Of a stretch of 49,207 nucleotides of DNA, positions 5,693 through 46,486 are shown one piece after another. Numbering within the stretch: the first letter of the stretch is position 1; each line of letters starts with the position of its first letter. This DNA comes from Bugula neritina (Eukaryota; Animalia; Bryozoa): assembly GCA_964035545.1 (NCBI GenBank), contig CAXIUT010000057.1, positions 103,431 through 152,637 of the forward strand. The letters run 5' to 3'. The notes beneath the pieces were generated by a model that was not told where the DNA came from, ran no database searches, and was given only the letters and a program-made list of their open reading frames with translations. Made by a program: the position numbers and the translations under genes.

Positions 5693-6540
5693 ATGAAAAG
5701 ATAGATTCTTAAGGAATATGATCTCTATGATGATATCGTTCGTTTGAATCATCATGAATACTACCAGGAATCATTTGATACTTCTGAAATAGTTGCGCAT
5801 TTCTAGAAGATACTATCTAGAAGACCTATGAGATAGAAAAATTCATGTAATTTCTTTTTGAAAAATTTGGAGTCTGTTTCAGATAAAAGTGTCTACCTGA
5901 TTATTAAGTGGCTAATTACTGTGCATAGAATTATCAATCGAGTTGAAAATCCTTATTTACTAGAGGAGATATATAAGAGTTTGGGTAAGACGAAGAAACC
6001 TATGCTGCAGGAGAGAATTGATCAGTATATTCAGAGTAAGTTGGTACAGCCTTATACTCAGTATCTTCAGAAAATAGCTTTGCTTAAATTTAGAGTTATT
6101 TCTCATAGAACACATAGAACAATCAAAGAAAGTAAAGAGAATAAATAGAATTAATAAAACTAATTGAATTTGGGATTTATCAAGTATAATCTTCTTCGTT
6201 TTGCTGTTAGATAATTTTAGGTTCCTATCCGGTAGTTAATGGGTTATTTTGGGTAATGCTATCCTTTTCTTTGTACGTTTACTATTCTTATCTACCGAGA
6301 CCTCCTGGTAACAATGTAATAATATAGAAACTGGTCAATTAGCTTCGATAGCAAATCCAAAAATAGTCTATATCTGGAATAACTCATGAATAGTTGAATA
6401 AATACTAAAACTAACTATCACAATTTGATACAAATACCAGTAAATCAGAATAATATTTATCTTTTCCTATCCTTTAAACTCAAATGAGTCGGTTTTTATG
6501 TTCTAGTGCTAAGAAGAAAGTATCTTGGATTTTATAATGA
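5693..6540 (+). CDS. Hypothetical protein, possibly divergent ANTH/ENTH-like; one intron
   Basis: Contains YLIIKWLITVHRII, which resembles the ANTH KxLxxxHxll helix. Removing 6308-6327 extends the frame to TGA 6538-6540. Confidence 0.6.
6308..6327 (+). other. 20-nt spliceosomal intron
   Basis: gtaacaatgtaataatatag. Removal avoids the TGA at 6395. Support is frame-based only. Confidence 0.7.
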
Positions 6541-6586
6541 TTATTTATAGTTATACTATATATATCATTTGCTTATTGGATTTTTA

Positions 6587-7729
6587 TCATTTGCTCATTT
6601 TTGATTTAAGGGATTATATTATTTTTTTCTGTTGAGTTCGAATTAACTCACTTTTGGCAAAATTTTTCTTTAATTATCTAAATTATATTTCCATAACTTT
6701 GAAATCTTAAAGCTATTCTTTATATTTTTTTGACAAACGTTTGTAATGTTGAAGTTATTTCTCAAGATTTCCCACTTTTTTCATCTATCTAGCTACCTAA
6801 ACTTCTTCTCCTCTCGATATTTATTCTCCTCTTTCAGAACGATCCACTGATCGATTCATATGATCTCTGGAACTGCTTCTCGGTAATGCTTTCTTGGATG
6901 ATAGTGGTCTTTTATGGCTATTTACTTTTGTTTTTTAAACTGATTTTTTAGAAATTATTGAATCTCGAATAGACCTTTTGCTTGTATCTTTTTTATCTTT
7001 ACTTTTATTGCTTCTTGATGATTTATCGATTGAATATTTAGGTCTAAGCAGACTCTCAGTTTATGTACTTATTTTTCTTTAGGTATCTTAGAAGATAATT
7101 TGTTTTTATGATTTTCCTTTTGATTTTTTTCCTACTCTGAGTGTATCTTTTTCTGATGATTTTCTAGAATTAATGATTTTTTGTTCTTCTTTTCTTTTCT
7201 TGATAGCTTGTTGAATTTAGAAATAATCTTAACTATCTTCTTATGCTTATTAATCAGGAAAAGATGGAAATTAGATAGTAAATTTAGTATGTTGTCTTTA
7301 TTTTTATTATGCACACATTAGAAATCTAGCAGTATCTTAATTAGGTTTTGAAGGTACTTTTTATTTGAATTATAATTTTTATTTATGATTTTGTTTATTT
7401 TTATGATCAACTATTTATTCTTACTAGCCTGATGAAACAGAAAAATTATCCATCTTTTTTTAAAGTTAATTTAACTTTCTTTATAAATCACTTATTTCAT
7501 TTTTTTTACTTTTTATATCTGTATCATTCACTTAGTAGTCATAAACAATCGGTTTATTTGAAATATTAGAGAGAGTAGATTTTTTATTATCATCAAATTA
7601 TGAAACAAAACGATATTATTATCTATCTCTCCTACTTTTTTGACGAGACGAGTGACCAGCTATCTCTAGCTAACGATCTAGTTCATCATGCATATATGAT
7701 AGCTTTTCTTTGGACGTTGAATACTTCAT
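6587..7729 (-). CDS. Hypothetical K/E-rich protein with C-terminal coiled coil (380 aa)
   Basis: ATG 7729 to TGA 6587, single open frame under code 30. Confidence 0.65.
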
Positions 7730-7943
7730 TAATATTTAAATTTATCCTTTATAATATCAGTTATTGATATTTATTTTTTATTTAGATATTTTGGTCTTTA
7801 AAAGATAAATCAAGTAGAAATATTGGTTAATACTTAATATAGATAGTAATGATCCAAAAATAGGTTTAGGATTAATATAGCCCTGATGAATCATGATAGC
7901 TTAGCGAGATGGAAGGAGGGAGGAGGGCTCGGCTATCAAGAAT

Positions 7944-8183
7944 TCATTTCAGGTTTTGAAAACGATAATTATTCTTTTTGTTTTTACGTTTTTTCTTATT
8001 TTTTGACCCTTTTCTGATCCTTTGAGATTTCTCCAATTCGAAATCTTCGTCACAGTTGTATGGGTTTTCAAGAGGCCTAAGTTTAGGAGAAGGAGGACAG
8101 ACCAATAGTATCATATCTTTGAACCCAAAGACCATCACTGGTACATCATTCATACTTTCCTAATTGATTATAAAGAGTCCCAT
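7944..8183 (-). CDS. Small basic hypothetical protein (79 aa)
   Basis: Extends the 7944..8153 ORF through a TAG to ATG 8183; lysine-rich C-terminus. Confidence 0.4.
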
Positions 8184-44240: not shown

Positions 44241-44306
44241 TTTATGTCTCATGTATTGATATCAATATTGATTATAAAAAAGATTTGATATTTTATGCTT
44301 TCAGAA

Positions 44307-44849
44307 TCATGATTTCTTAGAAGTGATTTTGCTCAACCAGGTAAATCCTTCATGAAGTCCGTCTCCAGTCAAAGCACAGGTGCCTTGGATGTTCCATTCT
44401 CTTCCTCTCAAAGTGTGAAGACCTAGCTTTTCAACTACTTCAGAGACACTCATGACTCCCATATCTTGTTTGTTAGCCAAGACCAACAAGACAGCATCCT
44501 TGAGTTCGTCTTCAGCCAACATCTTCTGGAGTTCTTCTCTTGCGATCTCAACTCTTTCTTTATCTGAAGAGTCGACAACGTAGATGAGTGCCTGAGTGTT
44601 CTGGTAGTAGTGTTTCCAGAGTTGTCTGATTTTATCTTGTCCTCCGACATCCCAGACAGTGAACTTGACCTTCTGGAACTCAACTGTTTCAACATTGAAA
44701 CCAATGGTAGGAACTGAAGAGACGACTTCACCGAGTTTAAGTTTGTAGAGGATAGTGGTCTTTCCAGCTGCATCAAGGCCCAACATAAGAGCTCTGAGTT
44801 CTTTCTTTCCGAAGAGGTTTTCGAATAGTTTTGTAAAAGCTACGCCCAT
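44307..44849 (-). CDS. ARF1: ADP-ribosylation factor (ARF1-like GTPase, 180 aa)
   Basis: [26 protein letters not shown]. Confidence 0.96.
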
Positions 44850-44990
44850 TTTAAAATTATAAGTTAAAAGTTTTTGAATTGGTTCTTAAATGAAAATCCT
44901 AGTCAGAAAAATGATCAGAAATGATCAGTTGTATTGAAGATTCAACAAAATAGATGATAGATATAAGAAAATTATTTGATTGAGGGATAA

Positions 44991-46486
44991 TCATAAACAG
45001 TATATAGGACTATCTTTGATCTTTCTGAGACTAACTGCAGGTCCAAATAGCTCTTTGATATTTTATATTCCGAATTGAATCATTGTTGGACGTTATAAAC
45101 TGAGACCCCAAGCTATCACTGACACATCTTCAGGAAATCCCATAGGACGAAGCATTTCAGGTCGGAAAATACCAGAATTGCCAATTTAAACTCTCTTTTT
45201 GAGAATTGGATGGGTACCTAGATAAAAGAAACTTTACCATAAACTTCCAGAGAAGGCTACGTGTAAGGATTGTAGGTAGGTTTAAGTTATATATTTTTAA
45301 TTCCTATTTTTTAATAAAATTCTGTAAGAACTCCAATTAGGTGCTGAAGACCTAAGTTTCTATCAATCACAAATCCTTAAACTTGATGAAATTCTGCTAA
45401 ATGAGTGTTATCTAGAGTTTAATTTCTGAACACTCTATCAATAGAGAAGAATTTTCTTGGTCTAAATGGTTTTTCTTAAGCTATTTTCTTAAGATATTGA
45501 GAAGAAACTGCAGTAGTGTGAGTTCTTAATAGATTTTTGAAGGCTTATTTAGGATCCCATTAATAATCATATCCTTTGCTGCCGAATCCTCCTTTTTAAT
45601 GCACTTATTTAACAGCCTAAAAATATTGTTTATCAGGAACGGTTGCTTCTTGAGGATGAGAAACAAAGAAGGTATCATGAGCATCACGGGCAGGATGTGC
45701 TTGAGGCTGGAAGAGAGTATCAAAATTCCAAAAAGAGCTTTATACATATCGATCAGTTTTCATTTATTCGAATCCCATTTCTAGTAAGATTTAGATGAAT
45801 TGTTGTTTAGTTTTCATTAATACATGAAGATTACCGTTTTCAATATCAAATCCTTTAGCAACTGGATTGAATTTTTTGAATTAATGTTTTTACCATTATC
45901 CTTAGGCTATCATAGCACTTGTTAATTCTGGGACAAGTTGTATTTTTTATGAACGATAGCTTTATCCTTTTGTGATGAGGAAGTTTGTTTATACTTTTTC
46001 TTATATCAATTTTCTAGTTTTTATTGATTTTATATCTTCTTTTGATAGTTGTTCTCCTTTACCTTGATGGATCAACAATAGTTTTTTTTTGTCTTAATCT
46101 TCAAAAACATCTTTAGTTTTGAAGATTTTATTGTCTTTAAGCAAAATAATCTTTTTCTTCATGGCATTTCCGAACCCAATCTTGAATTATCCCTTTAGTT
46201 ATTGTTCTATCACCTCTTTGGGTATGCCTTAAACTGTCGATAGTTGATATATTCTTGCTTATGGAGTGCCTCTCTCAGCGTATGACTATCCTTAGGCTGT
46301 CAGAACGAATCTAACTACTTTTTTATTTTAAAGTTTGATGTAGTCTAGAGCTACTAAACTGACAAGTTAGGCATAGAGAGCTTAGTGTGTGAGTGCAAAT
46401 TCTTTTTGGAAAGGAGCCGAATCTAGTATTTCAACATTTGATAGTTTTTTAAGGATGGCATCCTGAACATCAATATCTGCCTGCAT
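44991..46486 (-). CDS. FARSA: Phenylalanine-tRNA ligase alpha subunit (491 aa); one intron
   Basis: [63 protein letters not shown]. Confidence 0.96.
45218..45237 (-). other. 20-nt spliceosomal intron
   Basis: gtaaagtttcttttatctag. Removal gives EVYGTHP and puts EIGNSG in frame. Confidence 0.93.

Follow-up and report, generated by a model that had tools for sequence, protein, structure and literature searches.

Introns that are both tiny and tightly limited in length probe the smallest substrate that a spliceosome can handle, and they have been described in detail so far in heterotrich ciliates, in Paramecium, in Loxodes and in nucleomorphs. Those of Paramecium measure about 20-33 nt, and those of chlorarachniophyte nucleomorphs, which are spliceosomal and of the GT-AG type, 18-21 nt. 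A published value for Paramecium is "around 25 bp" (PMC5014332). Introns of the karyorelictean Loxodes magnus have a mode of 17 nt and a mean of 19.3 nt, with 93% of them at most 25 nt long, and were annotated solely from RNA-seq, since gene finders fail on them (PMC11441545). In the heterotrich Blepharisma undulans, according to a 2026 publication, 79% of introns are 15 nt and 10.5% are 16 nt long, and the 15-nt motif, GTAAWWTTTATWTAG, has a conserved A at position 10 (PMC13685798). The same paper calls intron lengths in Paramecium and in three peritrich genomes "similarly narrow," giving no number in the text, and describes introns of a length divisible by three (3n introns) as rare outside heterotrichs. 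Paramecium belongs to the same class as the peritrichs and is possibly their sister group (PMC10553269). A literature search on 20-nt introns in ciliates returned nothing specific. Here we analyze eight 20-nt GT..AG segments that interrupt genes in a 49,207-nt stretch of DNA (the window) from an assembly deposited under the name of the bryozoan Bugula neritina (GCA_964035545.1, contig CAXIUT010000057.1). Judging from their sequence, the segments are very probably ordinary U2-type GT-AG spliceosomal introns, reduced to a minimal architecture in the peritrich ciliate that carries them.

Results

Protein-domain continuity across the 20-nt segments

All eight segments were recovered where an earlier note on this DNA had placed them (Table 1). 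Each is 20 nt long, begins with GT, ends with AG and carries an A at position 15, that is, at −6. Three lie on the plus strand (6308, 25228 and 25879) and five on the minus strand, and their density is low, at roughly 0.3 per gene. The earlier note had set seven of the boundaries by restoring recognizable protein motifs. Homology does support seven of the segments as introns, but the exact boundaries of two of these, in the HscB gene and in the GDSL lipase gene related to acyloxyacyl hydrolase (AOAH), rest on flanking profile matches and are not pinned by a homologue. The eighth segment, at 6308, was called from motif and reading frame only.

In the DEAD-box helicase gene the junction is exact: the Pfam DEAD profile is matched at positions 2-54 upstream and 56-145 downstream, the split codon being position 55, and Helicase_C follows farther downstream in the same frame. 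In the gene for phenylalanyl-tRNA synthetase (PheRS) alpha, the tRNA-synt_2d profile is matched in two different frames, by 45233-45859 (profile 6-179) and by 45030-45200 (profile 185-241). Splicing leaves five residues across six profile positions. Alternative removals take at least 47 nt and cost conserved positions. In the kinase gene, each GT..AG of 8-120 nt was spliced out in turn and the result scored with a kinase hidden Markov model (HMM) built from intact kinases of this same ciliate; the 20-nt segment comes out best, with 190.7 bits vs. 109.4 bits for the unspliced reading, and taking it out brings the HRD-to-DFG spacing to the 60 nt of 56 orthologues.

The Penicil_amidase match covers profile positions 2-649 of 675 and ends at base 25229, exactly at the donor; within it, the piece 24915-25211 matches profile positions 554-643. 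The spliced tail reads S-x-HYDDQ..., 27 aa for 26 remaining profile positions, and would fit the family motif. In the HscB gene, which we take to be collinear with bacterial HscB, the TIGR00714 profile (6-142) matches 28847-29239, beginning 25 nt downstream of the intron, and splicing gives ...NYFQIFS|IPEGYTVNPETIKSLARDLQKEFHPDKY, with an open frame to either side. For the GDSL lipase, the upstream frame matches Lipase_GDSL 1-118 at 34552-35010 and the downstream frame contains the DGFHPN block; among the frame-compatible joins, the segment is the sole 20-nt sequence of the form GTA..A15..AG.

The ERGIC-type gene, in which ERGIC_N 1-87 matches 30314-30598, is additionally frameshifted by an extra base 25 nt downstream of the intron. 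Only deletion of this base together with splicing yields ...KEMKIHLDIVMPSFPCEIISLDIQD... / ...KIHLDIVMPSFPCEIISLDIQD..., followed by a long clean frame. Because two independent DNA runs lack the base, it is a homopolymer error of the assembly that happens to lie 25 nt from a real intron. Finally, removing the segment at 6308 connects an open reading frame (ORF) at 5660-6394 with one at 6022-6537; the sole homology of this gene is a weak upstream ANTH match (E = 0.0097), and a search of the genome for the ANTH family did not score it.

Table 1. Candidate introns of the window and one assembly error
Position	Strand	Feature	Remarks
6308-6327	+	Intron, phase 0, ANTH-like gene (about 5660-6537)	GTAACAATGTAATAATATAG; GTA, A15, T16, AG; least supported of the eight
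10774-10793	-	Intron, phase 2, DEAD-box helicase gene (about 9873-11100)	Interrupts the PTRELA motif; exact profile junction
25228-25247	+	Intron, phase 1, penicillin-amidase-family gene (22869 to about 25336), close to its 3′ end	Penicil_amidase profile
25879-25898	+	Intron, phase 1, ERK8/MAPK15-like kinase gene (about 25450-26752)	Between HRD and DFG; HMM scan and orthologues
29265-29284	-	Intron, phase 2, HscB co-chaperone gene (about 28796-29400)	At the J-domain start; no other of the eight begins with GTC
30362		One extra assembly base in a G run	Missing in runs X2 (202/202) and X4 (9.67/9.67), full depth
30388-30407	-	Intron, phase 2, ERGIC/Erv41-46-type gene (about 29990-30650)	Profile and frame
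34556-34575	-	Intron, phase 0, acyloxyacyl-hydrolase-like GDSL lipase gene (about 34064-36282)	Profile upstream, motif downstream
45218-45237	-	Intron, phase 1, phenylalanyl-tRNA synthetase alpha gene (about 45030-46546)	Profile in two frames

Conservation of the kinase segment in related species

A scan of metagenomes with the upstream exon of the window kinase gave 80 orthologous loci. Measured between the H of HRD and the D of DFG, the spacing is exactly 60 nt in 56 of them, which lack the intron, and exactly 80 nt in L071 and L072, the two nearest relatives (75% and 72% identity, respectively). The extra 20 nt stand in the same codon phase as in the window, start with GTAA, carry A15-T16 and end with CAG, while their interiors are otherwise different, which is the pattern expected of a conserved intron whose sequence drifts. 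The spacing in L071 and L072 also fixes the 20-nt length of this intron independently of the HMM. An orthologue in the peritrich code, L088, has no intron at the site.

Length distribution across the genome

Counting motifs by length within the window (GT..AG, GTA..AG and GTA..AG with A at −6) gave no peak at 20 nt, because the introns are too few against the AT-rich background; the signal is carried by coding context and not by the motif alone. Gene models could not be built from codon usage in the window alone, as the frame calls were too noisy. Lengths outside the window come from 68 Pkinase loci with partial matches, on about 50 other ciliate contigs of the assembly, whose domain pieces were located in all frames. 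At 37 junctions, every frame-compatible GT..AG of 8-300 nt was scored by HMM, and a 20-mer was the best, or at most 5 bits from the best, at 27 of these. After curation, the 51 introns of the kinase domains and the window divide into a 20-nt class with 39 members, a 21-nt class with nine, a pair measuring 22 nt (L032 and L058) and a single 23-nt case (L055). In the last three, the frame must change by +1 or +2, which a 20-mer does not provide. The kinase-domain scans found no introns below 20 nt, no long ones and no 18- or 24-nt class. In a de novo frame and codon test, which took the GT..AG lengths joining two codon-biased frames over 290 kb, there was a single peak at 20 nt and a slight excess at 22 nt. 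Applied to 84 kb of peritrich-code loci from metagenomes, a de novo length test showed no peak, the introns there being too few and the species mixed. As far as coding sequence can define them, lengths have both their mode and their floor at 20 nt, where about three quarters of the introns lie, with a short tail to 23 nt.

Introns whose length is a multiple of three leave the frame unshifted and for this reason are not seen by a frame-based method. Each in-frame GT..AG of 12-45 nt inside kinase domains was removed, and the change in HMM score was taken. The gain exceeded 4 bits for 16 removals, nine of them 21 nt long; these nine raise the score by 4-12 bits and restore canonical motif spacing. 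Twenty-one is the only 3n length to be enriched (9/139 candidates vs. 7/1585 at all others; Fisher p = 8e-7). All nine introns begin with GTA, and eight have an A at +15. In one example, taking the bracketed residues out of HRDIKPSNLLL[VFLCEEK]NKSCDLKICDLG gives the standard 20-residue HRD-to-DFG spacing. In the paralogues L033, L070 and L013, a common site holds three different 21-nt sequences, the removal of which restores that spacing. The earlier note had cautioned that stop-free 3n introns would be invisible to its method; this proved to be its weak point, as a 21-nt class exists.

These lengths bear on the claim, also made in the earlier note, that all introns are exactly 20 nt and that the spliceosome acts as a ruler tuned to this value. 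The eight window introns all have this length, as do 39 of the 51 curated introns, and 20 nt is the only peak of the de novo tests; the very narrow, position-defined geometry, with 20 nt dominant, is the part of the claim that stands. The nine in-frame 21-nt introns, uniquely enriched among 3n lengths, and the 22- and 23-nt introns of L032, L058 and L055, which demand a frame change beyond any 20-mer, contradict it. They point to a hard floor with a short upper tail and not to one value, so that a strict 20-nt ruler appears very unlikely.

Several candidates were set aside. A 22-nt candidate in the window (36063-36084) was dismissed: the coiled-coil gene at whose 5′ end it is located is poorly defined there, and its frame works without the candidate. 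No convincing 21-nt intron was found within the window, which is not surprising given only eight introns. Apparent introns of 19, 32 and 8 nt in L048, L038 and L040 are actually 1-2-nt frameshifts, and best scores at 43, 48 and 158 nt in L037 and L035 are, by eye, 20-nt introns or a real activation-loop insertion, misplaced by the HMM. The frame breaks of L038, L040 and L048, like the extra base at 30362, indicate that the ciliate contigs carry homopolymer errors, or pseudogenes. In L009 (contig C147 of the assembly, minus strand, 3379-3419 of the reverse complement of the locus), the 20-mers GTATTTATTTTATGTTTTAG and GTATATTTATTTATATGAAG abut with no exon between them. Taking out all 40 nt restores SDIWSLGVLMYY, and the first 20-mer is devoid of A15; the locus holds either one 40-nt intron or two introns around a zero-length exon.

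Internal geometry of the introns

Position-specific counts were made on 35 introns of 20 nt picked by protein score and not by motif, the scan imposing GT and AG but neither A3 nor A15. The consensus is G1 T2 A3 (A/T)4, about ten AT-rich free bases, then T13 T14 A15 T16 N Y A19 G20, or, in short form, GTA-N11-A-T-N-Y-AG. A3 is present in 34 of 35 introns, and A or T at position 4 in 31; positions 5-12 are free and AT-rich, and T13 and T14 are favored. The lack of a 5′ consensus past GT(A), remarked on in the earlier note, is confirmed, conservation being weak beyond GTA(A/T). Toward the 3′ end, A15 occurs in 35/35 (the frequency of A at interior positions being 0.30), T16 in 31/35, and G at position 18 in none of the 35 20-nt introns. 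A15 is found in 39 of 40 intron-shaped 20-mers and in 48 of the 51 introns overall, and its surroundings loosely fit yUnAy. Among the longer introns, A15 is kept in 10/12, and an A at −6 is seen in 8/12.

From position 17 onward, the first A that is followed by G forms the 3′ site in each of the 51 introns, and AGs before or overlapping A15 are ignored because of this. An AG occurs before position 15 in twelve introns and at 15-16 or 16-17 in four, and all of these are passed over, among them the internal AGs at positions 12-13 of the helicase intron and 15-16 of the AOAH intron to which the earlier note had drawn attention.

The segments could instead stay in the mRNA, being dealt with by programmed frameshifting or bypassing, or could reflect assembly errors or pseudogenes. 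True 1-2-nt frame errors do exist in these contigs (at 30362 and in L038, L040 and L048), but they look different, being 1-2 nt long, located in homopolymers and free of GT..AG. Moreover, the invariant G1 T2 A3, A15 and A19 G20 are common to about 40 unrelated sites, and two other species have the kinase segment at the same site and with the same length. If the segments were retained, the housekeeping genes for PheRS, the DEAD-box helicase and HscB would all be broken. Retention or error of this kind is hardly credible as an explanation.

Source of the window and state of its DNA

The G+C content of the window is 31%. Its longest ORF, in the window ORF statistics, has 192 codons when the standard three stops are used vs. 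1165 codons with TGA as the sole stop, and its frames are closed by TGA only. In PheRS alpha, TAA and TAG stand at invariant Glu positions (AEFHQV[TAA]G, PYT[TAG]PS and L[TAA]RPTM), and in 25 related metagenome loci the glutamates of the kinase APE and RE(I) motifs are written TAA/TAG (AP[TAR], R[TAR]I). Reading of UAR as Glu is the nuclear code of peritrichs (PMC10553269). The source of the window is, judged by its codons, a peritrich ciliate of nuclear code 30, in which TAA and TAG encode Glu and TGA alone is a stop; its telomeres are of the G4T2 type.

The assembly (G000) has 321 contigs and 216 Mb, and the window lies on the 417-kb contig C66. Kinase genes on the giant contigs C1-C8 are without in-frame stops, while those on small contigs, C66 included, have TAA/TAG inside them. 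Because kinase genes are split by code in this way between giant and small contigs, the ciliate is a cobiont inside another organism's assembly. The assembly as a whole combines the giant standard-code contigs, with multi-exon kinase genes and U2 small nuclear RNA (snRNA) genes, with some 300 small contigs in the peritrich code. Runs from three studies, bearing three organism labels, contain nearly identical ciliate DNA, and for this reason one ciliate rides on several hosts or samples.

In run X4, a contig departs from the window at about 30696 and continues as GGGGTTGGGGTTGGGGGT, which is the G4T2 (GGGGTT) telomere repeat. This telomere addition points to a somatic ciliate chromosome. It also bears on the suggestion that the segments are germline internal eliminated sequences (IESs), excised from DNA, with the contig being micronuclear. 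Ciliates do excise short DNA segments, and IESs of Paramecium can be shorter than 30 bp. The segments here, however, end in GT..AG and not in TA..TA, and a branch-type A15 would have no role in IES excision. In three independent DNA runs, under three host labels, they are carried at full depth and joined forms are absent, and with the somatic chromosome end at 30696 this makes an IES origin improbable in the extreme.

Other features of the ciliate DNA

The X4 sample has a somatic chromosome end between the ERGIC gene and the gene next to it, indicating an alternative fragmentation site near 30696. Runs X4 and X9, which share one organism label, both break at 26278 and 28780, and X4 depth is zero over 26770-28148. 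The X4/X9 strain may lack, or have other sequence for, about 2 kb past the kinase gene, although the break-point matches extend over only 18 nt and the indication is weak.

An Arf-family GTPase gene (44310-44885, minus strand; Pfam Arf, E = 9.5e-73) has 192 codons with no TAA/TAG and no intron, whereas in neighboring genes TAA/TAG for Glu occurs every 15-25 codons; this may be the codon choice of a highly expressed gene. The plus-strand regions 14724-18568 and 39408-44237 hold three tandem glycosyltransferase-family-90 paralogues (Pfam Glyco_transf_90) and three tandem paralogues of an unknown gene with the common string GTTTTTACTTGTTTACTTTGCTGG. A search of the window for Rfam families gave no match. 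About 25 metagenome loci from freshwater, wastewater and compost (within L073-L149) encode ERK8-like kinases with TAA/TAG at invariant Glu and have 27-46% G+C. Public metagenomes thus hold many peritrich-code species, usable for comparative intron work.

Discussion

In the reading that we prefer, that of spliceosomal introns at a minimal size, the segments would be removed from the mRNA, and the A at +15 (−6 in a 20-mer) would most likely be the branch point. This A would lie some 15 nt downstream of the 5′ splice site, and the first AG a few bases downstream would be used, AGs upstream of the branch A or overlapping it being ignored. Twenty nucleotides would then be the smallest workable sum, that is, the shortest length the machinery accepts, with most introns sitting there; the floor may be steric in origin.

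Several observations weigh against this reading. None of the runs listed as containing this DNA is recorded as RNA, and all four runs compared (X2, X3, X4 and X9) are DNA, X2 having GATC Hi-C ends, and contigs cross the introns unspliced. Of the snRNA survey proposed in the earlier note, the U2 search was run on the assembly; it scored 47 of 16,443 candidates, all of them host copies on C2 and C3. The intron at 6308 is without homology support. The 40-nt case of L009 indicates that the distance from the 5′ splice site to the branch may not be absolutely fixed. Outside the window, the length sample represents one protein family, the kinases, with about 50 junctions, and detection of the 21-nt class hinges on HMM score gain and may be incomplete.

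The closest parallels are with heterotrichs (Stentor coeruleus and Blepharisma spp.), in which 15-nt introns dominate at about 80% and 16-nt introns make up about 10% (PMC13685798). Low intron density, GT-AG ends, a floor length that holds about 75-80% of introns and a small +1 class are common to both, as are an A held in position six bases before the 3′ end and a 3′ module, TTAT-N-T-AG (PMC13685798). The two differ in the distance from the 5′ splice site to the presumed branch A, which is 5 nt longer here (+15 vs. +10), in a floor length that is 3n+2 here and 3n there, and in genetic code; the Peritrichia, within the Oligohymenophorea, are also distant from the Heterotrichea.

Introns of Paramecium are likewise tiny and of the GT-AG type, but the spread here is much tighter (20-23 nt), at the lower edge of the Paramecium range, and 3n introns are not obviously depleted (21 nt in 9/51 of a sample drawn from kinases). 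Loxodes also has tiny introns; its distribution is broader and multi-peaked, with 3n lengths depleted and a floor at 16-17 nt, in contrast to the one sharp mode at 20 nt seen here. Nucleomorph introns are comparable in absolute length and narrowness, but they belong to a relict endosymbiont nucleus, in which introns are very dense and the spliceosome is reduced, whereas here introns are sparse in a free-standing somatic genome.

The earlier note had presented the window as a separate case of fixed-length introns, perhaps not yet described for this group. This is doubtful, given the narrow lengths reported for three peritrich genomes (PMC13685798) and the match of the 3′ half, with its A at −6, to the heterotrich 15-nt motif; the 20-nt mode is possibly already visible in Figure 2g of that paper. 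The nine 21-nt introns among 51 may differ from what it says of 3n introns, and annotation pipelines may not see introns of this kind.

More tentatively, peritrichs might have arrived independently at the minimal-intron solution of heterotrichs, a proposal that we regard as possible but rather doubtful. It would comprise a hard floor, a branch A defined by its distance from the 5′ splice site, an identical TTAT-N-Y-AG module with use of the first AG after the branch, and tolerance of stop-free 21-nt introns, at about 20%, as TGA is the only stop; 3n introns would be few in annotation-based surveys possibly since gene finders are blind to them.

For annotation, the finding means that gene finders miss these introns, and the in-frame 21-nt class completely, so that contigs of peritrich cobionts within assemblies of other organisms will be mis-annotated. 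Searching for the sharp motif GTA-N11-AT-N-Y-AG offers a means of correction. For the evolution of splicing, a second ciliate lineage with a sharp 20-nt floor, a heterotrich-like 3′ geometry and a 5-nt longer 5′ arm would offer a clean structural and evolutionary comparison. Were the heterotrich-like solution indeed reached independently, the two floors, 5 nt apart, would be a natural experiment on the minimum distance between 5′ splice site and branch point.

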